A stretch of 64,000 bases of DNA, from contig DF237447.1 in assembly GCA_000708835.1 (NCBI GenBank), forward strand, positions 1 to 64,000, read 5' to 3'. The notes beneath the pieces are model-generated. The model ran no database searches and was not told the origin of the DNA. It worked only from the letters and a program-made list of their open reading frames with translations. Shown one piece after another: positions 1 to 54,040 of this stretch; the first letter of the stretch is position 1; each line of letters begins with the position of its first letter. The translations under genes and the position numbers were made by a program. The stretch is from Klebsormidium nitens. Taxonomy: Eukaryota; Plantae; Klebsormidiophyceae.

Positions 1-3000
1 TTTATCCGATGGAGGTCAAAGAGCAAGCATGGCAGTCGAGAGAGGTCCTTTGGAGGGACGTCTGCAAGAATGTATATACGAGGAATGTACCACCCCGCCG
101 GCGACTGCGGCGAAGTTAGAAAGTCGGCCAGGCCGGGGATGTTGAGTCTGACGACACTCTAGAACTGGACTTCAGCTGTCTTTGTGCAATATACAGCCAG
201 GTCCGAGCGGGAATGGAGCGGATCCCAGGACATCAGACCGCCGAGACAAGACAGGATTCAAAGCGGTTTGCCGGACTGCGTGATGAGTACCCCCCGCGCA
301 CAGCTCCGAGAACGAACGGACCGTCGCTCGGTCTCATTGTAAGATAAGAACGAAGACTTAATTGGATCAAAGTGAGGTGGCTTTAATGATCCGATATGGT
401 GCAGACGCCAATTACTTCCGGCAGGGACTGCTGGACTGACGCAAGACAAACGAGAGGGACCTGCTCCTATTTGGGCCGTTTCGAAGCTTGGAGAAGCGGA
501 GAGTCTTACGCCTCGATCACATTAGACCTGTGCCCAACAAAGAAGTCCAAATACACCCTGACAGCCCAAACATATACAAACAACAATGTGTCCAACAAAC
601 TCATCTGATAAAGATCGATCAGACACGCTTCCTTCTGTCATTAAACACACGAGTGTGTTTTGATTGCAGCAACTCTCATCATGAAAAGAGCCATTAGAGA
701 CGCTTCGACTCGTCGTGACAGAGGTAACGAAGCTCCATCACTTGTGCAACGCTTGTTTTCTTCATCCGCTCTCTATCAGTTCTGGACAAAACGCGCTGGA
801 CTGTTAGCAAGGGAAAGCCGCCTCTTCTATGTTTTGCTTCAGGTTTCCGAAGACGAACAGCCATTTTGGCTACTGGTCTTTGGGCTGAATATATTTCATC
901 GTGCCTCTTTTAGTTGACGGCCGACGTGCGTGTGACCTTCAGCGACGGAGCGAGCCGCCTTCTTTACGTCTGGCTTCAGAGCCGGAGTTGCGCAAGCCAA
1001 AACGTCAGCTAGCTGGCGACTTCCTCAAGTGGGCTGATTGGTGAAACTAGTAAGGGCGTTCATTTTTACGTTTGTCTACATGTTGAAGCATTGAACACGA
1101 GAGTTTCCTGAAGTAACAAGTCTTGTAGCTAGAGTTCAACCGCGTAGCACATGGTGAACAGTATTTCAAGCAGCCTTCCTGACAAGGAGACGGCCCGTCC
1201 GAAGAATATTGAAGAAAGGTACAGATCGATCATATTGAACTCCTGGCGGCTCTGGATCCCAAGCAAGTACTGCAAGTTGGGCACGCATCTACGCGGCCAA
1301 CAACACCCGCGTATCGTCACAGCCCAACGGCAAACGTTCCTCGAGCGCCCACGTACGGCCAGGTCACATGAACAAGAGGGCAATCGAACTTAGAAAGTGT
1401 TCAGATAATTGACACAATATGGTTGGTTGAAGGGGCAGCTGAGAAAGGTCAGGATATAAGATGCACAAAAGCTCCGTGGCGTGCCTGTGCTGGATGCCGC
1501 AATAGCAACTGGATCCCAATCGCAACACGCACGGCACAGAAAATTCTACGAGACGTTTGCCTTAAGGGGCAAAGCTAGCTGATATTCATTTCTCTCTGAT
1601 TTGCACAGGGAACCTTGGTTGGCCTTCCAAAGCCTGCATACATTGAACGCGCGCACTGGGGTTGTTGATAGGGTTACGTCTGACGGAAGCGGAAGGATCT
1701 AAAGTTTATTTGGGCCACTCCTCGTGTATAACTCTCTAAGGTGAAAGAGTAGTAGCTCCTCCTTTGCAGCTTCAGTGTCCTGAGAACACCCGTGAAAACT
1801 TTGAGCAAAGAAGCTCATAATCACATGAGTCTACTCACGGCCGTCCGGTCCTTAGTGAGGTGCGGACAGCCGCTGATGTCTTTCTGAAACGGTTGTACAA
1901 GCTCATGCAGGGACACGATATCAGAAAGAGAGAGCGAAGGCAAGAGCGCTTCGCGGACAAGACTTGCATTCTGGTAAGCCCGAGGTCCTCATGACGTCAC
2001 AATTAGTACTGATTATCGGCTCGCGGTCGGGCGCGAGGTCCTTTCCATCAACTTGACCGTATGATTTCGAGAACTAGCATGCACAAAGAAAAACCGACCC
2101 TTTTGAAGCGCATTGATCCTTCTCGGAGCGGAGGCAAGAAACCATTTACGAGAGAGTCTCATGTCGTCATGTCAGGCATACGTTTCTTCCAAACAGGCGG
2201 CATCAACGGTTGGTGTCGCACCAGCGAGACTGAGCCTGAGCCTGGAAGCTCAAGACGTGATCTTCTTTCCCTGTCGCCAGAGAAAGATTGCACACACTGT
2301 TTATCCGCTGCTTCAAGACCCGAGTAGTCACTACAAAAAGGCCACCCAACTTTGCGCAGCCGCATATCAAATGCTTTTCCAAGAGAGGGCCTCGTACGAG
2401 CCCTCCACGAGGCGGGCCTTCCATGTAATACAAAGTCCAAACGCAACTCGAGCACACAGTCCCGTATTTCAAAGTTGGATCTTGTGTGGGCTTGTGCGAC
2501 CATAATTGCCCAGGTTGGTCAGTGAAAACAAGCTCCCGTCAGCTGCTTATTTGGGCTAGACTGAAAACTTGTTTTCCATCAAAGCCCGAAGAGAAGAATC
2601 GAGGAGGTATCTTGGGCCTGAATCTCAATCTCTGGCGTCAGGTTTATGGCAAGCAGCGGTTGATACCGAGCAAACTCAAGATCGCCATTCCTTGCCAGGG
2701 ACAAGACAGAACTGACGATGACTGAGCATGCCGGACGCAAAATGGGAGCATCTTTTTGTGCTTGAGGTTCCCCATACGACCATACCCAATCGCCATACGG
2801 TCTTGCAATCGTTCAAGTTGTGGAACTCGAGATTCCTTCGTACTCGCAGCTTCAGAAGACGCTACTACCAAGTGCCGTAGATTAGACGTCAAGTCAAGGG
2901 CTGGGTCTTCATCGCTGCATCTTACGTGCATGTACCTGATCGATCGCTCAAGTACCGCTGTACTACCTAACTGAACGATTCGCCAGAGAAACTTTCAGGT

Positions 3001-6000
3001 GCTTATCCCGGAATGAGACTGAAAGAATCACGTTCCAGAATCGCGTCTTCATCGCACAACAGCCGCGGACCGGGAGCAGACTTCAACAGGACAACCACCG
3101 CCTCATTCTCACTGGATCGCCCTCGGCTTATACGACTTACGGAGGGGGATCCCCCCTCGGGCGATATTCTCACGGAGGTCGCCACTGAGGGCCCGCCGAT
3201 TCACTTGGGACTTACGAGAATATTTGCAGCTTTACTCAAGCATGCAGTGGTGCAAGTGAACTTGGTCGTAGTAATTGCTACATCATGCTCGGGGTTATAT
3301 ATGAAGGCAGTCCCAATGTCTTCGCACACTACTCACCAGAATGCAGGACAAAAAGAATACGCCATGCATGCTCCGCGATGGCTTTAATAGACCAGTCGAA
3401 AACAACTTGAAAGCGGAGGCATCGTTTGGAATCATGCAAGCCACCGCAATCTAAGAAGAGTGATGCCGCACCACAATGACGATGACATGCGAGCCAGAAC
3501 CCAATATGCATATTTGACGGCAGGCTCATTCCAGCGGGCTTCAGTACCAATGACCTGGAAATTTCACTGGGTTTGACAAGCCCAACTTGTCAACACGTCC
3601 TGGCCCGCAACTGCCCGCAACTAACAAACATACGACTGAAGGGACTGACTAGAAATAGGCTTCCGCTGGACGCATCCCCAAGTGCTCGTCAGTCAGTATC
3701 GACCACGTGGGGGCATCGTAAAGCCCCTCAGATCATGCCCACTTCTGCACTTCTTGTTAATGCTTGAGAGGATTGAATGCAACACCACTGATGCAAGAAA
3801 GTGCTGTGCACGCCTGTAGCGGCCCTCAATTTTGTCGCACACTCCATTTACGAAAAATTAGCGGTTAATCCTTGCCACGTCACCGCAAGACAACAAAGCC
3901 GCCTCACAAAATTGAGTGAGAAAACCCAATTTCTTTCTTGCAGATTTGGCAAAACCGACACGCGAAGCGGCACGATCAAGCGGCAGCTACATCGTGCCGC
4001 CGGAAAGGTACGAACCGGCAGATACTTCAATCCCTTGTGACTCCAAACTCCATCTCGGCGTTCTGGGTACTAATCTATCAAAAGGGGCACGAGAAGAGAG
4101 GACACGGTTGTAGGAAGGCAGCCAGAAAGGGGTTAGCCAGCCAGGCCGTAAGTAGGCGCCAACCGCCCACAAGTAGGAACGTTCTCATGTTGCTGGCAAC
4201 TCTGGAGAAGCTACTTCTCCGGATTTAGGCAAGATTGGACAAACTTGCGGTCGAAGAAAGTCGGGGCAAGCGCCCCTTCGATCAGTCTTCATCTTTACCG
4301 CTCCATGATAATGTAGAACCCAGAAAAGCGTTGCCGCAAGATTGTAGCATGCACGCATCCGGCATTTTAGAGCAGGGGAAGACTTATGATCGATTGGCCT
4401 GAAATGGCCTTAGCATAAGTGAAACCGGCTTTCAAGCCAGAACTCGAATGAATGTGTGTGGGAAGCGTTTTGGTGGGCCCCTCGGATCAAGTCACAGCAC
4501 AAGTATGGGCACCCGAAAATGTCGCACGTCCTGGCCCGCGGTAAGATCAGGAGCTCCAATATGGAAAGTTGGGAGTGCGTCGAAACAAAAGAACGGTTAC
4601 CAGTGCTTAGCTTCCAATAGCGGCTTTAGTAGTTAAGACTTGCGCAGGGGTTGAAGCAGCCCAGGAGACTACTTGTCCTCGCTGATCGAACAGAGAATTG
4701 ATACGGACTTGCAGCATAATCTCATTCTGCCCTCCCCTGTGCAAGCTTCGAGTCGACAGCATTGGATACGTAACCACTGACAGATCTTTTGATACAAAAA
4801 ACTACGTACTCCGTTATTGTTGCTAGATGTATCTAAGAGGAGAATGAAACATTTTCAGTAAATATAGACGTATTGATCGAGAGGCGCCCGTTTAAAGCAA
4901 GGGATGTTTCATCAAACAGCAATATGGTAGATACAAAAGCAGTAACAGATCACAGATGCACTTCGCCTCGCCGGGTCCCCAGCTCGCGCCCTAATCAGAA
5001 TGTACTCGTCTTGCGATGACCATGGAACCTTTGTACATGATTATTTTCTCGTGCATTAACGTGCAAGGATCGATTTACTTTCGAACGGAACCTTTAAACC
5101 AAACTTGAACTTATTATAACTGTATAGGCAGCCAATTGCTTTCAGAGGCGTAGATAGACTGTAAATCACGTCAAAGTACGAGGGGCCGCGAGCTAGCTGT
5201 CTACTAGACCGGTGAGCAGATGACGATCAATATTCTGCGGCATCAAGGTGTATGTTCTGGCGTTCTGAGGCCGCAACAAACCCCTCTCAAAACATGGATC
5301 AATCTTTGCCACATCAATACGGAGTCGCGCTCCAGTGCGAATGCGGTTGCTAGTAGGCAATTTCCCCTTCCGAGTTCTAGCAAGGCAAATTGAAAAGGAC
5401 GGCTAGACGTATCAGAAAGTATGCTGAAACTATCATGGATCTTGGGCAGTCCCATGCCGGCATACGGTCATTCCGTACAATTAGAGAATCGAGGCTGCTT
5501 TCGAAAGCTCCCTACCTGGCACAAATGCACATGTGGTGCTAGTTGACGGATAAGCAGGAAGGGTTCACCTATACAGTCAAGCTGTAGCGTGATCGATGGC
5601 AGAGAATGCTTTCGGAGCTTGGAGAGGTTAAAGGGTTTGGTTTGAAAAAAACCTGAACCTGCACAAAAGGTTGGACTTGTGTGCTCCGGCACAATCTTAC
5701 CGTCTCATTTTGCTTCCAGCCAAACGCTTGCCCCTGTGCCATGTCAATTCTGAGTCGCCTAGGTCCCATCTTCTGGGAGCTACTTGCACCACGCAAGCAT
5801 GCGAGGGCCACAAAGAGAGTCACCAGGAAAAGGCAAGAACCACAACGGACGCCCTCTTGTATTTACTATGTAAGACCCGGACGTGCTATGAGAGGATTAT
5901 GAGTTCAACGGCCGGCATAACATAGCGGTCGAGCGACATGTTAGGCAGTGTTTCGTGTCGCCTCAGCTAGCAGCATGCCAGGGAGCTAAGCCAATAGGGC

Positions 6001-9000
6001 AGATTGGTAAGAGACGTCTCAAAGAAGGCAGGTGCAAAAAAACTGCTCACGAAACAGGTGACGTCATTCTTTCGAGAATGCGGCAGCATATGCAGTTTAG
6101 TGAGTTTGTGGACTCGGACCGCCAACGTGCTCAAGCCTCGACGCTGTCCTAGCTTCTTCTCAAGAGGACCAGAATCCACAAGGCTGATAAAGATTGCAAA
6201 TATTTCGAGCGATCCGATATTATTTTTCCAATCAATGCTATTTCGTACCAAAACTGGCGGCTACGAATTTCCAGAATGGGCGCATTCAGGGCCCAGGTCG
6301 TCAGCTCGTTCTGGCCCGCAATCCAGTCAAACGTTACTGACAACAAGAGTCAGGCCAGGCGACACGGAAATAAGGGCCGCGTACAGGCCACCTGCAGGTC
6401 ACATGAATATGGAGCTTCCCTAGTCAAACTGTTCACTAATCTTTGATCCTGGATTGCAGAGTAAAGATGTAGGGCTAAACATGAAGTCCCATCAAACTTC
6501 ACTCGGCGGTTCCCGGTGCAGACTTGAGGCTGCCCAGTGGAACCCCTTCGCCGGTGTAGCTGATAGGCTCACCTGCCAAAAATCAGAGCTGCCTATCAAC
6601 GAAAGAAGTAACAGAGGCGGACGACCTCCCATCACTTAAAGCGTTGACGCCGCCCATGCAAAGCAGGAACGACTGCACGCCTCTTCCGAATGAAAAGCCG
6701 CACGTGATTGTACTGCGGGCTTGCAAAACGCGCTCAAGGACGGACGATTTTCCCGTGTCATGTTTCCAGCTACCAGACGGCTTCTGAGACCACTGAGGCT
6801 CACAAACCCTGCAGTATGGTAACCACCCAAAGCTAGCAACTCAGGACGTGCAACAGATTCACGATTTGGGCTCTACTAGTGGCCGCTACGAAGAGTTTAG
6901 TCGGGAAAGGCAAGCACCTTTGTCAAGCTGCGGTTTTCGCGTTGGAAAGATCCAAGCTTTATAACAGGCAGTATAATATCCTCGAGGGTCTCGAGGGAAC
7001 AGCTTTGCTATATTTCATAAAACAGAGCCGCTTCTTTCGAAGTGGTGAAAAAGGATACAAGCCCCGGTGTGTTTTCGTGTGGACTTGCAGCTCCGAGTCA
7101 GAGCGAACAGCGCTGTGGATGAGATCGAATCATAAACCTGATCATCATCGCCGCGCTAAGGGTTTGAAAGTGAGTACTAGGTGATACCGCTTGAATGTAC
7201 TCAAGAATCAGCTCCCACGAACGGGGGACCAGGCGGCGCAAAGGACTCGGACCATGGACTCCACATGTGTGCGAGGTTAGGCAAACCCGCCCAGTAGACT
7301 AGAATCTTCTTCTTTATCCTCACAGAGTTGTTAAAGGAAGTCTCTAAATCTCGGCGTGGCCAAATGACATAAAAAACCCCAGCATTGCGAGGAGAAAAAA
7401 GCCTTCGCGAGCTAAACGACGCGAAGGTACGGGTTTATATGAGGTTGATTCGGCCCCTATCCACAGGCAACCACTCGTGTCACCATTAGTGGGAGAGAAG
7501 GTAGCTCCCCTATGACGTCAAACAAGAACTGTGATGAGGGTTGTCAACCCCGAGCTCAGAAGACGATCTTTTCACGGCCAACCGAAGGTAACAGGCTAAA
7601 ATTCTCGTTCGGATCACGCTTCGGAAACGCATTGATCTCAGCCTTCAATCAAAGAAAGGAACTCACGATACGCTGATGCACTAGAATCAGTACCAAAGAG
7701 ACTACTCAGTAAGTACAGGACTCTGAATGACTCGGTGCACAAAGAAGTGGGCTCTTGCAAAAGGAAGAAGGCCGTTGGGCACCATTTGGACGGCCCAACT
7801 TCTCGACACGTCGATCCTGGCCCGCATTCAGACAAATCAGGAAGGTTACAAGATGGGCAGAATTGGTGGACACAAGTCTTTGGAAGCATCCGCTGGTGTC
7901 AGCTCTCGTCCAAATCAGGATCCGCCATGAAGCCGCCCGATAGACCGCCTCGTCATTGCTGCCGTTTCAGAAAACATCGTAGAAAGCCGTTCATCGAGAA
8001 GTCAGTCACTCTCCAGAAAACACGACTTGATAATCTCGCAAACGCAGCTGGCTAAGCGCAAGTAAAGCGTGACCCAGATGAACAAGTACGTAAAAGTTCA
8101 CCACCCAGTACATGCGATCAAACGACGTACGGTTAAATAATAAAAGGGTTCAGGCAACGATCCTTGGGTTCCGGCTGAACTTGACAGATGCAGTGGTACC
8201 ATGCACAGATGCGCAAAAGCTGGCAGGTATGTTGTCAAGAGTAACTCCCTCATAAAACAACGTCCCGACCCGATTTTGCGCAGGGGTCGAAGATTCAAAG
8301 GGGTGCTATCATGGACACGAAACCAGGAACCTCCCTAGCTGCGCCGAGACCGCAGCCACAATTTGCCTTACTAAGGTAAAAGCGAGCTCCGGGTCAGAGA
8401 GAGAGAAGGTTGGGCTCGTCTTGAATGATTGCCCGTACTACTGTGCACGACGTCCTGGCCCGTCGATTTAAGGGAAGAGCGAGAAACGCGAACTCAGGAT
8501 TGTTTGGAAATTAAACCCGCATCTCCACCTCTTACAAGCAAGAAAAGAAAAAGGCATCGAGCCCCCTGAGGAGGAAAGTTCGGTAAGGTAGGACCCTCGA
8601 CCCAACGTCTCAAGCGTTGATACGCTTATGCGAAGCCCGGAATGAGACAGCAACAACAGCCCTACCAAGCAGAGCACGTCTTTATGAAGTGATCAAAATT
8701 GCCGTTTTTCCGACGCCTGTGCAACTGAGCTCAAAGCAAAAGCGCTGATAGGGACACTTGCAGTTTATCCGGATATTTTTTGTGCACAGCTCCCAAGGTC
8801 CATCGGGCGTTGGCATCAATTACCTACTCGAGTCAGCATTGGAGTTTGAGCGGCACCGACAAGCCCTAGTATGTATGCACGATATTCTCGTCTGGACCGT
8901 CCATGCAGCTTCCGAGTCCGCTCACCGCATAATGCTCATGAGGTAGACCTCATCATCTTGATCGATCGTCATTGCTACTTTTGACGTAAGCTTTTGTAGG

Positions 9001-11479
9001 GTTGATCGATCATCCACTAGAGCCTAGGCGGCGACCAAGCAACGGAACAGGAACGGAAAAACTAGCGCTTAGCCAAAGGGACAGTGAACTGGTGCCTTAC
9101 CTCAAAGGTTGGAGTGCGCTCTCTTGTCAAAATCTGAAATAGGTTACATGACATCTAGGAAGCCCGAACTGATAAGTCAATTTATGCAAGAGCAGCCGGA
9201 GCAACAATGTGCCAATTCTTTGGCCGGCTACGACGCCAAGACGACAAAGCGGTCGACAGGGCCCGACGCACGAAATCCATTTGGGACCAGGAAGGAAAGG
9301 CAAAAAGCATGCGCAGTCACTTGAGAATGATGGAAACGCACAAAAACGAATCGGGATAAGTGTATTGAGCATCACTGGTCGTTTTCCTCGAGGCGCTGGC
9401 TCTCTCCACCACTGACCATGCCGGCCAAGAACAGACGAATTGAAAGACATTTGAACAACGAAAGACAGGAGCAACGTTTTGAAACCGCACGGCGCGCTTT
9501 TCAAAACGACATCTATGCAGGGGAGAGAAGTCATAGGGCTTGTCTTGTGGCAGACAGATGAAAGGCCGAGCTAGAGCGACCTTCAACTTGATCCCGCGCA
9601 AACGGCGAGCGCCTTGGGCAGCTTTTGAGTTAAACTCTGGAGCGGGCAACTTTTCGACAAAGGAATTGCGTAAGGACCGGGCTGGAAGGTAAAGCACATG
9701 GATCCAGCATCCACGAGAAGGAGCTCGAATGACCTCTATGAGCAGAAATTTAATCGCTCAGTAGGTCAACGGTCCGTCATCGCTGCAAGTCTGCGGTACA
9801 AAGAAGTAACCATCAAATTCTTGCGGTTGAAAAGTAAGCAACTTGGCATGGCTGCTGAGAAACGCACCTACCTGTAAGTAGCACGCGTAGACTTAGGGCT
9901 AGCGCTCGAAAGGATGCGCTTGCGGAATTACAAAATGCTTCAGACTCTTGCAAAGCAACGCTGACATGTTCCGTCCTGCCATGATATCAATCACCCCTAT
10001 ATTCAAGTTTGCCCCTAGTATGGCTTCAAACAGAATTTGGAGCCTTTCGTCCTGATGCGCCAGGCCAACTTGAAGTGTCGAAGGTTGCCCACATGAGCGT
10101 CGGTTGCGAACGAAGTCCAAAAGTACGCACGCAAACAGAAAAAGCCATTTTGTGGCAGTTGCATTTGAGACGCAATGGTGATGACGCAATGGCAATGGCA
10201 CGTTCCCAGTGCTCAGGCCTCTAGCTAGCAGAAACTCGACAAGTTGGGTAGATTTCCGTTTGCCCGGTTGGGTCGATGTGAACTACTCATGCCCGACACT
10301 CATGTTGGAAAAATGCGGTCAACCAAGATGGTTGGCGAAGGTGGGCTGGCCGCATCGTCACTTGAGGTACGTGCAAAGAATAACGCCACCCAGTTGACAA
10401 ACAGTATTGCTGCGTAAAAAATGGGTTCATAGTGCAAGCAAGCCCAGGCTTGCAGCGGCCCAACGGAAGACCCCGACTTTGATGGAAAGGTCGAGATTCC
10501 GAACAAATCAAAGTGCACTTACAAGAGAAATAGGTTAAAGTAGGAGTGAAAGCAGGCAGTAGACCGTATCCCAAAAGATATAGCGCGAAAAAGGCAGGAC
10601 CGATGCCCCTGGCCCGCGCTTAGCTAGCCAATATTGCGCAACCTGGACAAAGCAGCCACCAGATTTGATGGTGGACTTTGGCCGGCGATTGTCGAGCCCT
10701 AGACGCCCTTGACAAACAGTGGCCATGTTCTGAGCTTGAAAATGAAATCGGAGATTCAGCGAACCAAAGATATTGATCTTGACTCTCTATCAGATTTGGG
10801 CTGACAGGTACACGAGGGCATGCAGTCCGAGACGAGCTCAGATCGTGTTCTCTGTAAGGTGGCATCAGGAAAACCCGCATCATGGCCGGGAGTCGCTGCG
10901 GTTGTTACCCGAGAATAGAGAAGACAATCGTGTACGACGCCAGGTTCTAGATCTCCCTCTCTGCATGCCCGCATCTACGTCTGTTTACCGTGCTATAGAG
11001 GCTAGTAGCTCGCAAAGGGCCGGGGACGCAACAACTAGAGAAAAGATGCGGTAACAATTTTTGTACGTATGTTGTCGAGAAGGAGCAAATGACAACTTTG
11101 ACTAGACGCCTCAAAGGCGTACACTGTCTGGGAAGTAGGCGTGACGTAAGACAAGCCCCGGTCGCTTTTTTATCCTCAAGCCTGAAAATGAGGCAACATA
11201 CAAAACAACGCTCTGCCTGGTTTTCATTGTTGGGAAGTTGTAGCTTTCCAAGTTGAGCCATCGCCTTAGTGTCAAGCAAACCGGAGGAGCTGATTATCGT
11301 TGCCACGGTTTCGGGCGAGGAAGCCACTAAAATATTTGTTAAGTACCAGCCATTGGGCGATCAGAGCCGGTGATTCACTGCCTTCCTAAAGTTGATAGAT
11401 CGTCATCTCCAAACCAAGAAACAGCACATTTCCACCTTAGTATGTAACAAAGTTTTCGAAAGAAGTTTGAAAGGAGAGC

Positions 11480-28300: not shown

Positions 28301-28739
28301 TCGTGATCCAACCGAGCTTTGTGATATCTCTTGAGAAGGTATGCCTCAAGACAAGAGGCGAACCTTGGACCTACAAAAGGCCCGTGGCTTACCTTAGCGG
28401 TGATGGCACGCCGTCCTAATAAGAGGCCCGGCCGCCCGCACAGAACCCTATAGCGCAATGGCTCGGGACAGGTCCGTTGAGTGGATTGTGGAGAACGCAA
28501 CTGACAACAAAGAAAAGTGCGGCAGAATATTACTTTGACATTATTGCTGTTGACAATCATTAATGGATCAGCATGGACTGGCGTCGTACTCCCGCGTGTG
28601 AAATGCGCGCGCTCTCTTTTCCGTCTTGATAGAGCTGATGAAAAAGCGCAGGAGTTGCTCTGCCGATGCGAACACCCAAAAACACGAGAGCCTGAGATGC
28701 TACGACGTTTGCCCCAAGATTCAGATTTTGCCCGGATTC

Positions 28740-40600: not shown

Positions 40601-41169
40601 CGACAAAATGCGCTCTAGCACAAAGGCGGCTGATATCTGGTACTACAGATTTTGCGAGCAATTTGCCAACTTTTGATAACTCGAACGGGTTGAAGCGCTC
40701 TTAGAGTAGTTCCATCTCAAGAAGATGGGGGTCAAACTTACGCAAAGACGAATTGGCTTCTGTGACACTGGTACAAGTGAGTTTGAACACCTCACCAAAT
40801 TTGTTCTCATCATTGCCACGGAAGAACCCAATGAGCGAAGACTGCGGATTGCACGTGCTATGAACTGCGCACACTACATGATTAGAGACGAATTTTCAAG
40901 AGAAAGGCTCATTCAGCGCCTTAAAACTCAGAGGAGAACGAATGCAATTCAAACTTTAAAAGCGCATGGACGCTTCGGCCCAGGCTGGACAATATCATGT
41001 TATTATGCAGATGACTACTAAATCAGGAGCGCTTGAGCAAGTGACAAATCGTCCCGTGTCCTTGCAAGGGACGGTTATTTACGTCGCCGGCAATCAAGAA
41101 CCCGTCTGTGAGCACACTGCCCCCGTTAATTGCGCGCAACCGTTGACCAGCATCCAACGTTGCTTAGCT

Positions 41170-42290
41170 TCACGGTGGTAGCCACCGGAAGGAGGTGCTC
41201 AATGCGAAGATGGTTGCAGCTTCAATGGACATGCATGGTGGCAGGAGACCAGCTAAGGCCAACTCTCTGATAGAATGCTTTGCGGCATCACACAAAGGAA
41301 AGAAGGGAGCTTTGGGTAGCACAAGTGGGCCCCGACGGCTCCCTTTGCATCATCGCCACTTTGGTCAAAAAGAAGAGCGCCCAATGGAAGCTACCCCCCA
41401 AATCGACAACAAACCCCGTCCTTTTGGCGGATTCCCGCAAAGCAGACGCGGCGTCGGGAGTGAGAACGTGCAGCCAAACCGATACAGAGGCAAGGCCAGG
41501 AAGTGTCGGTGTCGCAAACAGGTGTATTTGGTCCCGTCAAGTTCGAATTCACGACTTGAATAACATGCGTACACAAAAGGATCAAGTGTCAAACGGCACG
41601 TTTTAAGAAGCAGGCTGAAGACAATGGTTTGCAGTCAAATAGAAGCGAACTGTATTGACACGTCACAAGCGGCATCACTGTGACGGAGCATGCTTTGCTG
41701 TTGGTATACAAATGGTTATCAGCAGATAATCTGGGGACAATCTCACTCGGGAACGTGAAATGAGTTTGTGTCAAACAGGCTGCCATTGATAGAACGGGTG
41801 AACTACATGGCTGTTGCACACGCAATCTTCTTCCGAACCAGGAAATACACCCCTCAGCACAAATAACCTTCCTCGCTTGGCCTTTTCTTGCGAAAATAGT
41901 GTAATCCCTAACTTACGGTGGTGTTACCTGTATGACCGTGACTCGGCAATCTCTGAATCTTGAACCTCTGATCAGCATTTGCGACGTACAGATGTCTACG
42001 GCCCGATTTATGTGCGACCTGTGGCTTACTTGCTTGGTAGAAAGCCCTCTCCAGGTAGGCCGTCGCCGACCGCCAGCAATGTGTTGGCTCGCAAGGCGAA
42101 ACGTGAGCAGTAGTTGGCACACAACTGGCAAGAGAGAACGAGTTGAGTGAGAAATGACAACATCAGCACATAGATCCGCACATGAACAAGACTACTGCAA
42201 CTCAAATCTCCAATTTAAAGATCATTCAAGGTAGACAAATGCGTTCCGCTCTTTTTGAGTGTTCAAAATCAGGAAGGGAAAAGAGCAAAA
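41170..42290 (+). repeat. ~1.1-kb duplication, copy 2
   Basis: Paralog of ~36560-37680; same anchors. Confidence 0.85.
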
Positions 42291-43669
42291 GTGAAACACA
42301 ATGTGAAAACGTCCAAGAAGTATGGTGGACAGACAGTCCCAGCTCCCTAAACGCTCATATGTGCGCGGAGCTGAAGCATCGCAACAACGGACTTCCGCAT
42401 GCCTCATGAGGCATGGCCCTGAATTTGAGTGTCCGATTTGCAGGGCACGGCAAGCACGAGGACTTAGGCTCCGCCAGGTGGCAATAGGTTCAAGTTACTT
42501 AACCTTCGCATGAAAATCCCTTGCTCTTCAAGCATAGGCATCAGCTTCGGCAAATCCACACAGAATTCTCCTGAGCTGCGCTCAAGAATTGGACCTCATC
42601 ATGGCCGTGCAAGATCCAGCCTCCGCTAACCATGAAAGCTTTGAGGACCGCATGTTAGCAAAAACTTTCTCCGTTGGTCTGTCATATCTCTTGTAGGGAG
42701 TATGTACGCCAAGAAACCGTGCAGGTAGCCAAGACAAACCGAACAGCGCTTGACCGCAAAGTCGTACAAATTTGACACCAAACACACCAGGTTGGTTGCG
42801 GACATGCGGCATCAGATGGTTCCCAGCAATCGGTGAGCTCCCTCAAGGCACTCCATTCCTTGCCACCAACTAGTGGGTTGCAGCGGATGACGGAAAGAAA
42901 ACCAGTGGTACAGTCGACAAATGATCGTGGACGCTGGCGCGTTTAAGAAACCATCACTCGTCCTTGCAACAAGCGCAAGAGTCTGATCACCATCTCGTCA
43001 TATAGTCGCAGACATCAAGACGTCATATCAGGATGCGATTTGAAAGAACAAACGGGGAGTCACGAAGCAAAAGGCCGGTGATCAAAAGCTCCCAAGGCGA
43101 AAAACGCAGCCCAAAACCCAAAAGAGAATCTACGCATTACCGCACCCCGAGGTTTGCGGGAGAAATGAAGCCCCCAAGGGTAAACGGTAAGCGGTTTGTT
43201 TGCAGCACTTGATGAAAAAACTTCTTTGTTGAGCAGGAGTGTTGGACCGTCCGGCTGATTTGTATCCTAAACAAAGCCCCCTTATTCGTCTGATAGACTG
43301 CAAAAGAGTCATCCGACTCTGAAGGCAGCGAGACGAGGAGCTACAATTCAGATTTGATTCGAATGAGTCAGCTCAAACGGCGGTGACCTGATCGCGCAAC
43401 GTTAGCGAGGTCCGCAACACGGAGATGTCAAGTGCCCTTTCTGAAGCCCTTGCCGAACACGTCACTTCTGGACATCAAACCGCATCCTTGAGAAGCGAAT
43501 CTAGTAGCGAAAAGCTAATGTTGATAGTGCGGCACTGAAGAGATGCGTTTCAGCCCTTGTAATTCAATAATGCACTCTCAGACGGAGGAAGGGGTTCCGA
43601 TTAGGGAACTCCGCACGTTGGAAAGCTTGGGGCAGGCTCAGAATTGTTGGCAACAGACTGTTCATTGAG

Positions 43670-44485
43670 CTCAGTGCCGGGGGTGTGGCATCGTCCTTGC
43701 TGGCAAAAATGCTTTTCTAAGCCTGCAATAGGGACAAGCTCTGAATTGCCTGGTTACGACTACTGGACCTGGTGCTACCTGCCCATGTGTAACATCGTCC
43801 TGCCCTGCCGAGGCTTTCCAAACTACAGCAAAGACGGCTTCAAGTTTTTTGACAAAATACTGGGCCCGCTTTACCGACCCAGATGCTAAATCGTCCTGGC
43901 CGGCAGAGATTTCTAAGCTGATGTACAAATGGCTCCGAACGCGCACTGAAGGCAATTGGGCCCGGTTCACTGGCCCAGGATTTCGCATCGTCTTGGCCGG
44001 CAAAGAGAAGTAGGGACGGCTCTGAACGTCGTCAGACACAGCATTGGGCCCAGTTCAAATTCACCGGCCCAGATGTTTCATCGTCTTGGCCGGCAGAAAC
44101 TTTTTACCTAAGTAGGGAGGGCTTTAAGAGCTTGTAGAAGGACAGCACCGGGCCCGGTTCACCAGTTCAGATTCCGCGTGGGTTGGGCCGGCAGAAAACC
44201 TTCAAGCTAAATGCGGACGGCTCTGAGCGCTCTTAGAAGGATCACATTGGGGCAAGGTCATGGGACCATATGTTGCATTGTCCGGGCCCACATAAAACAT
44301 CGAAGCTCAAGTAGAAACGGCTCACAACGCTCTCCGAATGACACCACTGGGCCCAACTATTGAACCGTCCTGGCCGGCAGACAACTTTTCAGGTAAGATA
44401 CAGACTGCCCTAAACGCTTCTTGAGGAACGGCGTTAGACCCTGTTCATCGGCCCAGGTGTTGCATCGTCCTGGCTGGTACGAAGT
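43670..44485 (+). repeat. Tandem array of nine ~97-bp monomers (basic unit of the large array)
   Basis: Box GTCYTGGCC or variants at 43693, 43797, 43893, 43990, 44083, 44181, 44280, 44367, 44467 (spacings 104, 96, 97, 93, 98, 99, 87, 100). By-eye consensus: GCCCAGRTGTTGCATCGTCCTGGCCGGCAGAAAACTTTTCAAGCTAAAGTAGGGACGGCTCTGAACGCTCTTAGAAGGACAGCATTGGGCCCGGTTCACCG. Confidence 0.9.
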
Positions 44486-47400
44486 TTTAGAGATCGGAAG
44501 AGAGCTTCTGTCCATCTCTTCACTATGTCGACTAAGCAGAATCTCAAACATGCACGAAGACACAAACGACAGCACAAAATGAACGACAAAACGGTTCATA
44601 TCCCAGCACTGCTCAATTGTTTAAATTACTTTAAAGACACGAGCATTGCCATACTGGCCAACTATGAGGACGCGAGCAAAGTACACTTCTTACACAAGAT
44701 CATGCACTCAAATTGGAAGCAGAGAAGTCACGTGCTACTTAGCTTCCTCAAAGAATTGGGATTAAGCAGGCTTTAGGTTCTGCATTTCGACCCCATACGG
44801 GGTCCAACAAGCATCAGGAGAGTTGGATACGTTAGACGAAAAAGGGCTCATTTCAATATGAACCTACATGCAAAGCTCCACAACCTTGGAAAGGTCTGAA
44901 AACCCAAGACCGCTCAGCTAAGTGGTCGGACGGCTGAAAGCGGGCGCACGCCACAAACGCGCCACTGAACTCGACTCGCTCAACAGAAAGAGACCATCCT
45001 AACGCCTCTCAACGCTTTAATTGAATGGGGACGAAGCAGCTCCGACACTCAAATTGCCCACGCATGTACTGGATACTAGGGGCCAGGCGTACTGGCAGCG
45101 ATGCGTCAACCCACGAATCTTGAATCCACACTCACAGTTCCCGCCAGCAAACACATGCCTGATGCCTCTAGCTGTCACCGTTATCGACGCTGCCCATTTA
45201 GATATTACCAGTCCTAAGCATGAACACACTGGAAGGGTAAGGAGTGTATTAAGCTGAAACGGCTGGCAGCATATGTGAACAGCAGGGAAGCTGGGCTGGG
45301 CAGATAGGTTGATGCCCACTCGCTCCCATCATCCTTGCTGCTTGGCAACAGAGGTTTGAAAGCACGGGACAATGAGTCAACCAATGGACCTCTGCAAGTG
45401 CAACGCCGTTGACAGATCAACAGACTGTCGTGTCCGGACCGGGTAAATGGTCCTTGAAGCGCGGATGTAAGGAGAAGAGGGATGTCGCACAGAAAACTCA
45501 CAAGCAGGCCGGGCGCATCTGATTTACTTAGGACGAAGCAAACACTTCCTTCAAGGACAACAGGCCAGTATTCGGGCTTGGACACGTGGCAACACTATGC
45601 CTTGACGCTTCAAGTGATGGAGATTTGAATACCACTTGGCACTCTAGGCATCGGCTTGGATCAATTGAGACAGCCCGTCCTAAGCGAAGCTCGAAAGTGG
45701 ATCTCATGAAAGTCGTACGCAGAAGAACTCTCCGCATACATTTTCGCATACGAAACAAAAGATTCCGAGGAGCATCACAGCTAAGACGTGGATCAGCCTA
45801 AGGAGAAAACCAAACGGCACTGGAACGGAGAGGGTGGAACTGCGGTGAACCGCCAATGAAACACTTGCGAAGCCGCGGCGGCGAGTTGCGCAAACAACGT
45901 CCGTTCCACTGAGCTGCCTCAAAAGGATCCAGTCTTCGCTATATGAGATGGTACAAAAAGAAGATTGCGACTACTAAGAAATCACAAGTGCTTTGCTTGG
46001 TTATGCTCGAGTTTCCCGCGGCTTCAACTAGAGGAGTCGATCGTTCTTGCGCTCAGCCACAAAATCGTCATCATTGCGGTATTTTTAACAGACTCTCGGA
46101 CAGTCACAATGTTGCTTTTCCGATAAAGCAATCAGGGCGGAACCAGATAGTAACCGGAGACGAGTGAGGAAAACATTTTTCGACCTCAGAAATGCCTACA
46201 AAACACGGGAAGCAACTCATTCTGAATCGTGCAAGCAGATTCTATTCAAAGATAACCAGTCAGTAAGACCGTTCCAGGCCCGTGAGATGAGCCCGTTTTT
46301 CGTAAACAACAATCTCGGCCTCCCGACATCCTCTGACCTTGCACGTTCCGAACTGGGTCACAGCTTCACGATCTCAGCACTTTTTTCCGGTGACTAGTTA
46401 GAAAGAGAGATGACGTACTACTGAGGGGAGGAAACACGAGCTTTAACGTAAATTTCCCGACCTGAATATAGCCGAAAGATTCGTCCGACAAACTCGCAGC
46501 ACGTGAACGCCAAGTGCGTACAATAACTCCACCCCAAACGTACCTCGAAGGACCAGATAAACTTGGACACCTCATCCGCCGAACCGCGCCATAAAGGGGC
46601 TGAACCCCGTTTGATCAGTACGTTGACCAATCTTGACCACAATCTCAGTTCAAATCACGGGATGAACCAAGACTCCTTCCAAGTTTCACTAGGGAATGGA
46701 GCAGAATGGGCCCAGATTATTGAGTGCCTACCAGCAGTGTGCCAGGGAACTAGTAGGCGCTTTGCAGTCTGCTTTACTTTCATGGCGGTGTGAACGCGTC
46801 CAATCGGTGCTTCGACCCCGCCAACAATAGGCGAGCTTGCAAGGACGATTACTTTTTGTGGGCGACATTAGCTGCAGAAGAAAAAGGTACGTCGACATTA
46901 AAACAGCAACAGCTTCATGATTGTTTCGCATTATAAGGTTCTAGGAAAAAATATTCCGCGTGCAATGCGCTCCTTTTTTAAACATTGGAGAACGGAAGGA
47001 AAGAGGCAATCAAGTAGCTCGGAAAACTGTTTCAGCGAGTTCCCGCTAGTGAAGAATGGTGAGCACAGCTAGAGCGTGAGGCACAGGTCGCCCGCCGGTA
47101 TCCGCAAACACTAGCTCCTGATTCCCCAGATTTCTAAGAAAAGGTGTTGCTGCAACACGACGTGTGTAGAGACGTGATGAGCACTTTGACCACGTGTCCA
47201 CACCGTGCCTGGTCGTCCGTGACCGCATGTCCTCTTCGTCAGCCTATGCATCAGCTCAGAAAATCAGCGGAACAGTACTTTAGCTTGCCCAACAAGTGGA
47301 CCTTCTCATGGCCGTGTTACAAAATGAGGCCCATAAGGAGGTAACAACCAAGAAGCCCGAACCCGCATTCCAGCGGTGAGGTATACGGACTCGTTGCACC

Positions 47401-50400
47401 ACATTTTAAAAACTAAGCCCGTGGAAAAGTCCTAAAAACACCAGCGAACGCAGAGCATGGAACCGCAGTCTTCCGCCCAAAGAACAACAGGGAACACCTT
47501 AAGGTCCATAATGGCAGCGTCAGACCATGCCACCACATGTACTTGCGCTCCCTCAAGGCGCTCTATTCTTGCCACCAGCCAATCTAAGTGCAAGCAGGCG
47601 ATGAGATATATCTAGTAGCATGATCAAATCTGTCCCGTGACCCTTGCATCTTCGGGTCTCCAACCATCCCTCCTTGCGCGCACCTGAGACCTTGACCATC
47701 ATTGCCGGAAATTATATCCGAGTTACTCACTTCGCCGTCAATGGAGATTCCGGTCGTCAAAGTGAAGTTGAACGTACGGTCTGCCAGAATGAGCAGCAAA
47801 CTCTGCGAAGCGCTTTGAAAGCCGCTACCGCTTGATGTTTTTGGCAGCGCAATGGCAAGCGCTGCGGCAATCGGGCTGAACTAACCTATATGGTAACATG
47901 ATTGCACACGCCTAGGCAGACAAGGGGCTCCTGCTAGGACGTAGTACCAGCGGGCCAGACTCACGGAAACTACCACCATAAGGCCGCAAACAGTCTCTTG
48001 CATGCCATTGGTTTGACCTTGAACACGTGGCAACACGTTGCCCCGTCGCTTTAAATATTCTCTTCATGTTTGTTTGGTTGCTGCCAGTTGTACCTGGAGA
48101 CATTGGCTCAAGGAATCACAGACGGTATTTGAGCAAAGCTTAAGGAGTGGACCTCGTCATGGCCATGTGACATGTGGAATGCATGACCGTCTGAATTCTA
48201 ACAACCCAAATTCATAAACCTGCATGGCAATTTTAGGGACTCGGTCATAAGGAACATAAGAGACCAGCCCGTGCACACAGTTCGCCGACAACGGGTGGAC
48301 TTGCAGTAGCCTACTATCAACGAGGCGCGACAAGCAAATAGCGGAATGTGCAGCGTCAGAGTTGCGCAAGAAACATATTGAGCTCCCTCAAGAGTTTTCG
48401 TTCCTCGCCGCCCACCCACTGAACCGAAGATTGCCAGAAACAACGCCGGTAATGCGTGGACTTCAAATCGACCACCAGCCGTTCTTGCGTAGAACCGAGA
48501 CGGTAAGTTCGCAAACCAATTGTCCAGTTCAAAATCCAGTTTAAGAGTGCCAGTCTGCTGAAGATTTGACATCAGTCACAAGAACAGAAGCTCAGACGAG
48601 GGATGGACTTTGGTGGCTAAGAGCATTTTATAAGAGCCGGAAGGATACCGAAGTTCTCGTGTCGACACCTGAAAGGCGATACTCAACACTTCAGATTCTG
48701 GGCTAGCTCGCACTTGGCAAATGTGGGCATATTTTGAATTTTTTTGATACAGCACGGAAACGCTACGAAGTCGAAACTCGGGACTTCACTTTACGGCAAA
48801 GTGCTTCGACGGCGCTCTCCACTCTTCCACAGCGCGACCAAGGAAAACTATGCACTGACATGGAGCTCTTGGACAGGCGACTGATAAATTGACAAAGTCA
48901 CAGCACGTAAAAGTCAAGTCAAAAAGGGAGCAGAAGCTTTGTGGTTACTCGGCTACGCACACACAGTTGCGTCATCAGAACTTGGACAGCAAGGACGATA
49001 CGACAGACAAACCGCCTGTCCGGATCCGCACGAGGAGCAAGTTGAACGCGAAGCCGGCTCCAGATTCTCAAGGAAAGGAAATCCGCTGGGCCCAGTGTTA
49101 CCTGCCCAGATGTTTCGTCGTCCTGGCCAGCAGAAAGTTCCGAGGCTGTAATTGGGCTACTGTCCACTTGTTCGCCGCGTCGAGAACTCAGGTATTGACA
49201 AAACCAGGAACACATTGAACCATATAGAAGAAGCCTGGGAGCGGAGCGCAAGTTTTCAATGGCCGGTGAAGACAGCCCGTAGCACTGGTCGTTCTCTGAT
49301 AGTCAAGCTCAATGTCAATAGGCCAAGTCAGGGCGACAATCGCCTTCAAGGTCTACGATCCCGTTAAACCTAGGTTGATGCTATCAAGGCCGCAGAATTG
49401 AAGCTCAAGCATCACAAGCTACATGCTTCTTAGGATGACCCGTCACTGAACAAAGCGGATGTGGCAAGGATTCGTATTTTGAATAATGTGGGTCCCATAT
49501 CCAGAAAGGTTGGATGGCCTCAAAGACACAGGGGATCATGAGAATCGATACCTCAGTTTGATGTCGTCGTCACGGCCATAGGAGGGTCAGCCAAAAGGAC
49601 TCGTCTCATTGCAAGTTCTCCAACACGCGAATTACAAATGCATGTACATGAAAGCGGCAAGTTTGAACCCAAGGCTCCCAAGACGAAGCCAGATCCCCAA
49701 ACGTTTTCAAAGCCTAGAGTAGATGAGAAAGCATGAGGCCGCTTAAGAAGTCCTAGATTGTGCAAGCACATCTCGGCTTGCGGCAAACGTGCAAGGTCAT
49801 CTTGTGAACCACTGACGAGACTAGTTACTGCTGTGAAAATCTGGCATTGGTTATGTCGATCAGGATTTTGCAATGTGGATGTTGCTCTTTCTTTGATGGC
49901 ACTGCTGCAAACACTTTCTGCATATTGTGCTCATGCTAAAGCCGTCGGAAGCAACTTGATCAGGCATGTACAATTAAGACGCAAAAGACGGCTTCGACCA
50001 ACTTGTTACCTATCTGAAGGTCAGCAGATTATGGAGATAGAGAAACAATGAGCTGAAACAGCGGGCAGCGTATGCAAAATTACACCGAATCTGATTGGGC
50101 AACGACGCCCGGTTCTCCGTCATCATCCTTGCTACCTAGCAACAAAATCAGTAAAGGAGCAGATTTAACGGGCGAACAGGCAAACTCTGGGACGACAGCG
50201 CTGTCCTGACAACATCTTGTCGTAAGAGTGATTGGACAGATAAGGGGAAGATCTGAAGGCCAAACATTAAAGCTGAACAATGAAATACACATATCTTTGA
50301 AGCGGAGCGGGCTCATCCACATCACCAACAAGTAATACGAGATTGCCCCTTTCATAATAACGTATGAAGAATCATGTCACACTTCCTTTGAGACCGCGCA

Positions 50401-53400
50401 TGGGAGAGACTTCCCTAAAGGTGCTCCGCATATCAGATCTAGAGATCTCCTAACGACACGCCCAAAAGCCGAGTCCCTTGGGGAAGACGGACAAGTCAGC
50501 ACGTGAAACCGCAGCAATCCGCACAAATGTCGTCAAGGCGCAACACGGAAGTCGACGATCTACGGCGTCAGAACACCGAACTACATCCAATGAGCTGCCT
50601 CAAGAGGCTCTCTTCCTCGCCACAGATCAGCATACTACGGATCTGAACGAAAAAGCAATAGAGGCGTGGTTGACAATGGCCACACAGGCTGCCCCTTGCA
50701 GGTAGACAAAATAGTCCCTCCTTCCGCTGCAGCAGCCTAAGAATTCAATCATCATCGCTGAAATTCTAGTTCAGAGGTCCGTCGTCGAATGATTTGAGAC
50801 TCGGCCACTAAATCGGAGGGCGCCGGACAGTCACGGATTCCTGCAGCTGCAAGCATCCTGACAACTGGGAGATATAAACGCATTTTTCCATCCCGAGAAG
50901 TCGGGACCCAACTCAAGCGGAGCCATGTGAAAAGGTTGGGTCCGACGTGTACAAGCCAGAATGAGATTCACGCATTGCGAGCTGCGGGCCTTTTTCGTTT
51001 TGCAAGACTCGAAGTTCCGAGGTTGCAAGTGCCTAATGGGCTCGCCACGGATTTTGGTGTTCGTCCATCCGTTCTTAGAAAAAGACGGACTTCCAAAGGA
51101 AAGATAAGAAGGTTCGTGCGATTAAGTTCAGCGCTAACATAGAATGCATCGACTGAAAGGACGACTGCACGTGGGCGGAAGCGCCTCTACACACAATAAA
51201 AATGCATGTTACGAGTTGAGCGTTCCTGACGCTTTCGACGTACCGGGGAAGGATGGGGCAGCAGGAGCTCCTGATCGTACATGCACAAAGACGCGGCAGG
51301 CGTACTGAAGTATCAGTGGACGCATACTAGAACACGAGAACCCTCAAACTAGTATGCTTGTCAGACTCCCAAACCTTTTCTTGCTTCGGTTCAAGACGGG
51401 CAGCGCGCCAACATGCCCTCTATGTTGCGGTATCACCTGGTGGATAGACAATCGGAAGCACGGCCGCTGTGGACAAAAGATATGCCTGGTGCTTACAGAA
51501 GTGAGCACATAGACGCCTTCCATCAGGCTTTTGGAAAGATTTGATGTCATTCATTCCGAAGAGCAGAAATGCAGTGAGCTTGAACAAGTAGCAGCATATG
51601 GAAAAGGTCTACATTGGGGCAGGCAGTCAACACCCCAGTCTCCCATTTCATCCTTGCTGCTTCGTATGACAAAATTAGAAGCACAGGAGTATCAGACTGA
51701 TGGGGGACTCTTCGCAACAGTAGCGCTGTCGACAGACGGACAACAAGTCTTAATTTGAGCGAAAGCAACACAGCAATCTTGATCATGCGCTCATTTGCCG
51801 GGACAGAACCGGACAGTGACGAGACGAATTGAGAACTTGCACGACCTTGTTGAGCTCGGAAGTGGGCGCGCTTGCAAACCTTCTCGAGCAACATATACTT
51901 TGGGAGCAGGAACAACTCCGAAGAGTCATAGCATTTTGGGTTGTTGAGCGGCCGATTGTCGTGAACAATCGCGTTTCAATCTAGGTAGAGATGAAACGAG
52001 TGAAGCGTACGGGACTACATGGACGGCCTCAGCCTCGGTGTCCTCTTGCTCTCTTAGCCAGGTTGGCTTACCTAGGAGAGGTGTACAGAGCATCATGACC
52101 ACCAACATGACAGAAACTGTGCACTTGGGAGAGCTGAAGCGGCTTTAAGCCAAAACGAGCCAGTAAGCATTTGCCGATTGAAATGGGCGGGCTGCAACTG
52201 ACTCTATTGCATTGCAGGCACCGAAAACATTGTCATCTCCAAGAGTATTCGCGGGTCATGACAAAGTCATTCAATTCATTCGGTTCGTGGAAACCTGGCA
52301 ATCTACAGACCGCGAATTTGTGAGTTTGACCGCGAAGCTGCGCTTGTCCTTGCATACCATCTCAATTGATACCCGAAAACCGACACAGCGGCCGCTGCAT
52401 TCAGTGACGCAGCAATGACGACGAGGCTTCTACGCTGGTGAAACTCTGAAGCAGAGCACTCGGAACACCAAAGAGATTCTCTCGAGTGACCAAGAACCTG
52501 GTAGGTTGGAGTGGTTAGGACTTGGGACGGGCTGCCCACTTTTCACCCATCTCCATTTTAAAAGCATCTCAACATCTGGTCCTGCAAAAAGCTCACCCGC
52601 TGAGGTTGTCAAGCCGGACGGTGCTCGTACGCGATCGGATTGCAGCGCCTTGTGCCCCTTCCACGAGTTGAGCTGCACCTCCTCGCCAGTTTCTTCGCAT
52701 TCCTGGAACAGTTCCAAGCGGATGACGTCAGCGAAGGTAGGGAGGCATGAAATGCTGACGCAAATCAAATCAAGCTGACGCGGTGCCAATGGCGTGCCCG
52801 CCAGCTTCTCCGCGATTTTGCATGAGCAGGGACCGCTGACGTCAGCGAAGGAAAGGGGTAAGGAAAGCGGACGTCATCAGAGCAGGTTAGACTGTGGTGC
52901 ATGTTTTGTTAAGCGTCCCCGCTAGCAGTCACTTTCCTTGGGGGGAACTTGAACCACATGAAGAGGGACTGTGGCAGGTCACCGTCGCCGTTGACGAAAC
53001 TAAGAAGAGCGGGACGGAGTCTCTTTATACGGCATACCGTCGACTCAGGGCTCGCTTTAGCACGGATTTCGACAAAAAGAAGAACAAAACTGAGCAGCTT
53101 TCAAGGAAGGCAGAAACGTATCGAATGGAGTCTGCAGCCGTTCCGAAGCTTCGGACAGTACCGAAGAAGGGGCACTGGGGGATGCCAGATTCGGACGAAT
53201 AAATTCGCCTGCGTGAATCTGGGAGCTGCCGACCAGGCAAACTTTGAGATAGACGCCGGCTTTGACGCCCAGATTTTGATCCCTGTCTGGTTATGCACCT
53301 TAACTACCACTACTAGACCAATTAACCAAGTCAATCTAGCAGCTCCGGTACTCTCAGCAAACTCTTTGTGGAAAGCGTGATCTGGGCCCACAAAAAATTG

Positions 53401-54040
53401 CATCGTCCTGGCCACAGATTACCGATTTGAAACGGGATGCAAAACTTAAGACGGCAGAATAGATCATTTGCGTGAGGATCGGGGGAGGTGCTGGATGAAA
53501 GCAGAAGTACCGAAGGGCACGCAAGGGCTGACAACGATGAATACACGTTCCGAGTTCAGCTAGGCAGACCGTGCTGATCGCTGAACTCCGTTCGTTTGAT
53601 TTCACAAAGTCTCTGGCCACAGCAGATACTCCACTAAGTACCACAGCGGAAGGAAAGGATTTCTGGACAGCAAACCGACTGGAACGTTTCTCAAATTAAG
53701 CAGCTTCAGGGACTGGGACCACCCTCTGGGTCACAACCAGCCAGCTAGTGCCACATCACAGCTCCAGGTCAAACAGATGAAACGATCGCTGACGTGATCC
53801 TCGGCAAATGGAGGAAACGGCGAAACAGAGCGGAACACCGATAGGACTCTGATGAGGCCATGCGGAACTCGCAGCCAAACACGATGATTTTGGGTGTATG
53901 CAGGGCTCTGGGTGTTTCTTTCTTGCTTGCGGCTCTGTCCGAACGCGTTCACTTTGTGCTTGAGCTACGCTCGTCAATGAAGCACGTCATAGCCGAAAGT
54001 TAAATACCAACAAAAAAGAAAGTAAGAGTGTGAGTTATAC

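Follow-up and report, generated by a model that had tools for sequence, protein, structure and literature searches.

A giant, co-oriented array of candidate orphan box C/D-type small-RNA genes in the alga Klebsormidium nitens

The clusters of genes for small nucleolar RNAs (snoRNAs) of the box C/D type that occur in plants and green algae, such as Arabidopsis, rice and Chlamydomonas, owe their origin to local duplication, and a single precursor is processed to yield their members; the clusters are small, with two to four genes in the examples described, and mostly have targets (PMC5122169). The SNORD115/116 arrays (and likewise SNORD113/114) comprise tens of co-oriented orphan C/D units within a long non-coding transcription unit and evolve by birth-and-death (PMC12429941, PMC8789076), and such mammalian arrays have been described as eutherian-specific (PMC12429941). 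The present analysis concerns a stretch of 64,000 nucleotides (nt) from Klebsormidium nitens (GenBank assembly GCA_000708835.1, contig DF237447.1, positions 1 to 64,000), hereafter called the window, in which ~83 candidate box C/D-like units lie on the minus strand at 3531..53419. As judged from its sequence, this feature is probably a giant array of orphan box C/D-type, i.e., kink-turn, small-RNA genes. A full-text search of the literature on Klebsormidium and snoRNAs returned no description of such arrays.

The locus resembles the plant and green-algal clusters in its same-strand C/D-type units of 60-100 nt and in the occurrence of short spacers. Those clusters, however, hold a handful of genes, most of which have ribosomal RNA (rRNA) or small nuclear RNA (snRNA) targets, whereas here ~80 units with non-canonical boxes, with no target found and no Rfam match, are spread over 50 kb. 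With the SNORD arrays the locus shares co-oriented, apparently orphan C/D-type units that number in the tens and a birth-and-death mode of evolution. The mammalian arrays are imprinted and fairly regular and homogeneous, with one snoRNA per host intron; the array described here, in contrast, consists of copies that are 64-77% alike, are irregularly spaced and fall into at least four subfamilies.

The locus had been noticed previously, in what is referred to below as the original prediction, as an array in which a short inverted repeat is followed by a conserved box, TCRTCMTKGCC. This 11-nt box has 23 exact matches in the window, all on the plus strand, where shuffled sequences predict 0.23; when one mismatch is allowed, 70 matches are found on the plus strand and 10 on the minus strand. 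A perfect hairpin of at least 5 bp that starts 7-12 nt from the box accompanies 27 of 72 units, compared to 7.2% of control positions (p ~2e-13), and under a looser hairpin definition the corresponding values are 48 of 72 units and 35%. The window has a base composition of 50% G+C with a constant surplus of A over T on the plus strand. Co-oriented units of a box and an inverted repeat are therefore real, as the original prediction had it, but the gap between hairpin and box, given there as 11-19 nt, is mostly 7-12 nt, and of the proposed extent (1-53450) the end at ~53.4 kb holds while the start does not, the first unit being located at ~3.6 kb. The box and the hairpin had also been described correctly as parts of the unit, while a second conserved end beyond the hairpin had been overlooked: ends of the form NGA(N)GCC cluster 40-89 nt past the box in 37 of 72 units, against a background of ~2 per 10-nt bin. 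The box motif can be explained as an end of a gene for a small RNA, the general kind of which is known.

When read on the minus strand, the box becomes GGC, one nt, and then AUGAUGA, AUGACGA, AGGACGA, AAGACGA or AGGAUGA, a box C-like element in which both GA steps are kept and positions 2 and 5 are variable; AUGAUGA or AUGACGA is present in ~25 units, and AGGACGA, AAGACGA or AGGAUGA in the remainder. The order of elements within a unit is a closing stem of 3-6 bp, the box C-like element, a 7-12 nt spacer, a short hairpin, ~20 variable nt, a box D-like YNGA (found in 34 of 40 units) and the other strand of the closing stem. From stem to stem the units measure 57-90 nt, in agreement with the size of about 60-100 nt that characterizes box C/D snoRNAs, and the closing stem, which is GGC/GCC in 34 of 35 units and is extended by one to three covarying adjacent pairs, corresponds to the terminal stem of such RNAs.

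Several lines of evidence indicate that it is an RNA structure that has been kept, and that it belongs to the minus strand. RNAalifold recovers the closing stem unaided in two subfamily alignments, and covariation in the closing stem across 35 units amounts to 0.246, as opposed to 0.178 in shuffles, of which 4 in 500 reach the real score. The pair adjoining GGC/GCC occurs as five standard pair types. Among closing-stem cells, 22 are G.U and 12 are A.C, and because a G.U wobble becomes an A.C mismatch on the plus strand, the structure makes sense on one RNA strand only. The hairpin occupies a fixed place and has a subfamily-specific sequence in which the pairing is preserved, as exemplified by UGGGC/GCCCA, UGAGC/GCUCA, GUGAG/CUCAC, UGCGC/GCGCA and UUGGC/GCCAA. 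Furthermore, the minus-strand units fold better than their dinucleotide shuffles (mean z -0.47, p 0.008), while their plus-strand complements (z -0.12) and the spacers (z +0.13) fold no better than shuffles.

The C and D boxes together can, to judge from their sequences, form a kink-turn, i.e., a binding site of the Snu13/L7Ae type. When the units of classes A and B are numbered as kink-turns, the GA dinucleotides of the two boxes fall on the tandem sheared-pair positions, a correspondence drawn from sequence alone, and the sequence positions of these two classes match the canonical stem, the 3-nt bulge, the tandem G.A/A.G pairs and the 4b.4n pair of the motif. The 4b.4n position, which lies outside the pattern by which units were selected, is G-C in 23 of 40 units and G.U in 11 of 40. 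As in the kink-turns of box C/D RNAs and of the 5' stem-loop of U4 snRNA, the predicted element in most class A and B units thus combines a stem, a 3-nt bulge and tandem G.A/A.G pairs with G-C at 4b.4n; it differs from these in that many units carry an extra nt on the non-bulged strand and in that class C replaces the G at position 2n.

To count the units, a covariance model (R1) was built on 35 units with the closing stem as its only structure and was used in an unfiltered search of both strands of the window, a scan that the original prediction had proposed as a check. At E<=0.01 it returned 46 matches, every one of them on the minus strand, and at E<=1 it returned 73 on the minus strand versus 5 on the plus strand. 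The matches cover 3531-53419, and two weak ones extend to 54.4 kb. Merging of all unit lists gave the ~83 candidate units, which are spaced 93 to 2289 nt apart with a median of 473. A generic scan for a stem with GA...GA, which found 24 instances against ~11 by chance, represents a weak excess and was left out of the unit counting. Searches of Rfam 15, one with the gathering score as cut-off and one with E<=5, returned only a transfer RNA (tRNA) and chance matches, and no curated snoRNA family.

The best-scoring unit, a member of class A (49050..49134, minus strand; 56.8 bits, E 3e-12 with R1), comprises a GGC stem, AGGACGA, the hairpin CUGGGC/GCCCAG, and CUGGA followed by GCC, with 6-nt flanks; its fold shows the closing stem. 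Class B is represented by a unit at 42537..42612 (minus strand; R1 41.7 bits) with a canonical AUGAUGA, the hairpin UGAGC/GCUCA and a box D-like CCGA/CUGA adjoining the closing stem, as seen in the class B alignment and its consensus fold. Classes C and D follow the same unit plan and are mostly missed by R1. Class C has 13 units with a 6-bp stem, GCRGCA/UGCYGC, in which A-U, G.U and G-C occur as alternatives; the unit at 45266..45341 (minus strand), for example, has the stem GCAGCA/UGCUGC, AGGAUGA, and AUAU in place of a GA-type box D. Class D, with ~8-10 units of the form GUGGC...CUGA-N-GCCGC, shows a U.G wobble in the closing stem of most copies, and is exemplified by 42806..42866 (minus strand), which reads GUGGC, AAGGA, the hairpin UUGAG/CUCA(A), CUGA, one extra nt and GCCGC. 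A tight run of eight class A units is located at 43629..44481 (minus strand), where, according to the sequence and the R1 matches, the units lie 93-104 nt apart, with a single wider gap of 284 nt in which a weak ninth match is located. The inter-unit spacers in this run measure 25-30 nt, which is too short for an exon plus an intron, so that the units there must be polycistronic rather than located one per intron. Positions 1-3500 of the window contain no R1 matches and no Pfam-matching open reading frames (ORFs), and their AT skew is less pronounced (+0.08); the 3' end of class D-like type (UGAUGCCGC) present at ~2205 is a hint of diverged units that may run on to the window edge.

Conservation was assessed as identity over all paralogous alignments within the window. 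The closing stem is 94.7% identical (285 compared positions) and box C 88.6% (315 compared positions), followed by the hairpin arms (79%), the stretch after box C (73.5%), the stretch before box D (72.2%) and the hairpin loops (66.7%), compared to 72.3% in the spacers. Conservation is therefore peaked on the frame, while the guide-like stretches change as fast as the spacers do. Selection probably keeps the protein-binding frame and not the guide-like stretches, so that the units would qualify as orphans and would not be ordinary rRNA methylation guides.

The array grew as blocks of several units were duplicated, and birth-and-death decay followed. A self-BLAST of the window yielded same-strand matches alone, at 64-77% identity, and none that were inverted. 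One multi-unit block at 11500..15900 (minus strand) is duplicated at 20700..24980 (minus strand), with 69.5% identity over 3956 aligned columns, and several units of the latter copy have decayed boxes. The finding of one broken copy in about half of the unit pairs of these blocks points to birth-and-death turnover. In one paralogous pair, with unit starts at 15849 and 24916 (minus strand), box C reads AUGAUGA in one member and AGGACGA in its partner, with hairpin and flanks that are alike; this switch of box C type implies that the subfamilies are interconvertible by two substitutions. Outside the known units, more than 20 patches of 25-60 nt are 80-86% identical between 11500-15900 and 20700-24980, where the background is 70%; such well-kept patches could be exons of a host transcript, other small-RNA units, or chance.

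These data also bear on the remaining claims of the original prediction. Its reshuffled, recurring modules are borne out by the same-strand self-BLAST matches at 64-77% identity, and its view of the arms and box as a kept folding or protein-binding signal agrees with conservation that is sharply peaked on the box; for per-column conservation a flat profile had been named beforehand as the refuting outcome, and the profile found is peaked on the box and frame. The absence of coding capacity was likewise substantiated: six ORFs of at least 150 amino acids are present in the whole window, and the four of these within the array have no Pfam match. It was also correct in setting aside an array of clustered regularly interspaced short palindromic repeats (CRISPR), as the repeats are degenerate, the spacers are paralogous and no nuclease or integrase family was found in 30 ORFs. 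Its two proposals for the nature of the locus fared less well. A CENP-B-like satellite is at odds with the lack of an array in the Tandem Repeats Finder output, copies that are merely 64-77% alike and irregular spacing, and for recombination sites there is no pointer to a DNA-level site, the kept features being strand-specific RNA features of the opposite strand. The suggestion of 'processing sites' came near the mark, with the difference that the sites would lie at the level of RNA.

Several observations weigh against the interpretation of the units as box C/D-type small-RNA genes. Most units have a non-canonical box C, with AGGACGA and AAGACGA each differing from RUGAUGA at two positions; exact CUGA is rare (5 of 40 units); an extra nt separates the GA of box D from the stem in 13 of 40 units; and class C has no GA at all at the box D position. 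The internal element is a fully Watson-Crick hairpin, and no recurrent UGAUGA/CUGA pair that would represent C'/D' boxes was found inside the units. The box conservation figures are somewhat inflated, since the query copy of each pair was picked by its boxes, and about half of the unit pairs in the two duplicated blocks have one copy with a broken box. The expression, the transcribed strand and the processing of the units are, moreover, all inferred from sequence.

The searches for targets and for a counterpart in a relative fall on the same side. As a proxy for the rRNA of the alga, plant-type ribosomal DNA was retrieved from metagenome contigs via a 5.8S motif and annotated with Rfam; its long first internal transcribed spacer suggests conifers. 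On the contig that supplied the 5.8S and large-subunit (LSU) rRNA (L019), the full-length small-subunit (SSU) model fits 1265 nt only (632-1896), 2.8 kb upstream of 5.8S, which indicates that this SSU copy is deleted or misassembled; the SSU was therefore taken from another contig (L015). Anchored complementarity in the 20 nt upstream of box D in 41 units had a mean of 8.24 against this land-plant proxy, compared to 7.99 for shuffles, in a comparison that has no positive control, and two units reached 11 where ~0.7 would be expected. Unanchored complementarity of 72 unit interiors to the land-plant SSU, 5.8S and LSU proxy was at chance level. With regard to a relative, the last exon of the TruA gene that flanks the array (described below) matches a fragment (P0001; 79% identity) on an 88-kb metagenome contig. 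Two near-identical 88-kb contigs from different samples (L064 and L065; JGI Ga0590115_0001197 and Ga0590114_0001487) carry the TruA orthologue and are probably derived from a related streptophyte alga, so that they might be of use in comparisons at other loci; the TruA exons are 73-83% identical to those of the window at the DNA level, while the non-coding DNA is unalignable. No unit was found in the 19.5 kb downstream of TruA, up to the contig end, which indicates that the array is not kept there; it is either specific to its lineage or has another location in that relative.

It is conceivable, albeit unlikely, that the same kink-turn and hairpin elements act in cis within a single, very long transcript of non-coding or intron-like nature, where they would punctuate it by binding protein, block exonucleases or form ends resembling those of sno-lncRNAs (snoRNA-ended long non-coding RNAs), and are not released as guide small nucleolar ribonucleoproteins (snoRNPs). 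Constraint on the frame alone, with guide-like stretches that drift at the spacer rate, is what such elements would show, and the strand skew of the spacers, which is like that of a transcribed gene, the failure to find an rRNA target with the land-plant proxy and the irregular spacing of 93-2289 nt are all compatible with it; unit size, closing stem and box layout nevertheless agree with released snoRNAs, and the tight run at 43.6-44.5 kb, in which most units follow each other at 93-104 nt, resembles a classic polycistronic snoRNA cluster. It is rather improbable that the array is mostly dead, i.e., that a few ancestral snoRNA genes were amplified by segmental duplication, that most copies are decaying pseudogenes, and that the conservation of the boxes reflects unit choice and local gene conversion. 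The broken box in one copy of roughly every second unit pair from the 11.5-15.9 and 20.7-25 kb blocks, the neutral drift of the unit middles, the lack of an array beside TruA in the relative and the many other spacer patches that are kept equally well all speak for such decay. Such decay is, however, hard to reconcile with a stem and a box C that remain 95% and 89% identical over 285 and 315 positions despite ~30% divergence between copies, or with compensatory changes in the closing stem and hairpin, and in 34 of 40 units a C or U stands at position 4n, which lay outside the selection.

A signal at the level of DNA, be it an old satellite with a protein-binding box like that of CENP-B or a series of recombination sites, is already disfavoured and very improbable. 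Its attraction lies in the strictly single orientation of a short conserved box beside a dyad in a gene-poor 50 kb, and the box does resemble the CENP-B box of alpha satellite in being kept within otherwise diverging repeats. The CENP-B box is, however, a DNA-binding site in a regular tandem satellite, whereas here there is no regular period (Tandem Repeats Finder is blank in the array), the box pairs with a distant partner, the G.U pairs and GA steps are meaningful on one RNA strand only, and neither a recombinase nor a transposase was found among the ORFs tested; on the reading favoured here, the units are neither a satellite nor a recombination-site array. It is scarcely credible that the units stem from the local pile-up of a small mobile element, for instance a short interspersed nuclear element (SINE), a miniature inverted-repeat transposable element or a snoRNA-derived retrocopy. 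Many short, related and structured units are what such an element would leave behind, but all copies share one orientation and their flanks were duplicated along with them as multi-kb blocks, while the unit flanks that were read showed neither poly(A) tails nor target-site duplications nor terminal inverted repeats, features for which no dedicated search was made.

A number of other candidates were rejected. Relict dinoflagellate spliced leaders, as suggested by TTGGCTCAAG-like strings, proved to be box D together with the closing stem, read as their reverse complement. A coding repeat or a series of start codons (GCC ATG ATG) does not fit, as ATG is missing from most boxes, the period cannot be divided by three and Pfam gave no match. 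For a hammerhead or other ribozyme satellite, no Rfam ribozyme match was found at E<=5, and the units contain AUGAUGA and not the CUGAUGA...GAAA core. Internal promoter boxes of tRNA or SINE type gave no match, and ARAGORN found nothing. An integron-type cassette array was dismissed on the same grounds as CRISPR.

The surroundings of the array contain few genes. The six long ORFs of the window gave nothing in Pfam but one negligible match (0.064); there was no Pfam match for ten ORFs at 1-3.6 kb nor for ten at 54-57 kb, no recombinase, transposase, nuclease or integrase family among the 30 ORFs scanned, and no exact protein match on record for a 187-amino-acid ORF of the array. The stretch between the array and a tRNA gene (53420..57416) has no coding signal in the ORF scan and contains two weak unit-like R1 matches (53925-54000 and 54365-54442). 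The tRNA gene itself (57417..57513, plus strand; Rfam RF00005, 47.3 bits), which is outside the array and on the strand opposite to it, has a 29-nt insertion in the anticodon loop and was missed by ARAGORN; it carries a G3.U70 acceptor pair (alanine-like) and is located in the interval from the array to TruA. Upstream of the array, the closest protein gene on its strand encodes a TruA-type tRNA pseudouridine synthase (60576..64000, minus strand, with its stop just below 60576), as indicated by PF01416 on the last-exon ORF (E 0.0023) and by homologues named TruA (E ~1e-14). The last TruA intron (60659-61139, minus strand) contains a 125-nt unit repeated 3.9 times with 71% matches; the beginning of the last exon is repeated in every copy, such that ORF pieces with ...SQMVRVVVATA(I/F)REAAAG... 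recur.

The AT skew of the plus strand is +0.139 in the array spacers, +0.161 in the TruA gene and +0.012 in the intergenic region at 56-60.5 kb. This skew fits minus-strand transcription across the whole array, in which the spacers would be U-rich and intron-like, and the array is probably transcribed from the minus strand, with the start of the transcript expected within 53420..57416. Under the interpretation as small-RNA genes, one long minus-strand transcript, or a few, would run through the array, the core snoRNP proteins would bind every kink-turn, and exonuclease trimming would stop at the closing stems, thereby freeing stable small RNAs.

On a broader scale, it is possible, if doubtful, that giant co-oriented arrays throughout the genome of the alga encode hundreds of 'frame-only' box C/D-like RNAs, a system that would represent a plant-lineage counterpart of SNORD115/116 with a role other than rRNA methylation. 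Possible roles of such RNAs include the targeting of messenger RNAs, the capping of long non-coding RNAs and the buffering of snoRNP core proteins. Large tandem arrays of orphan C/D snoRNAs have so far been viewed as peculiar to placental mammals, and what they do is unsettled. If the units are not expressed, the locus would be a striking graveyard of snoRNA genes, of modest interest. If they are expressed, it would constitute an independent and far more diverged example, with ~80 units, in a simple alga near the root of the land plants, and would offer a second system in which the function of frame-only snoRNA-like RNAs and the growth of their arrays may be studied, with knock-outs and RNA profiling that, we assume, may be easier in the alga than in mammals.

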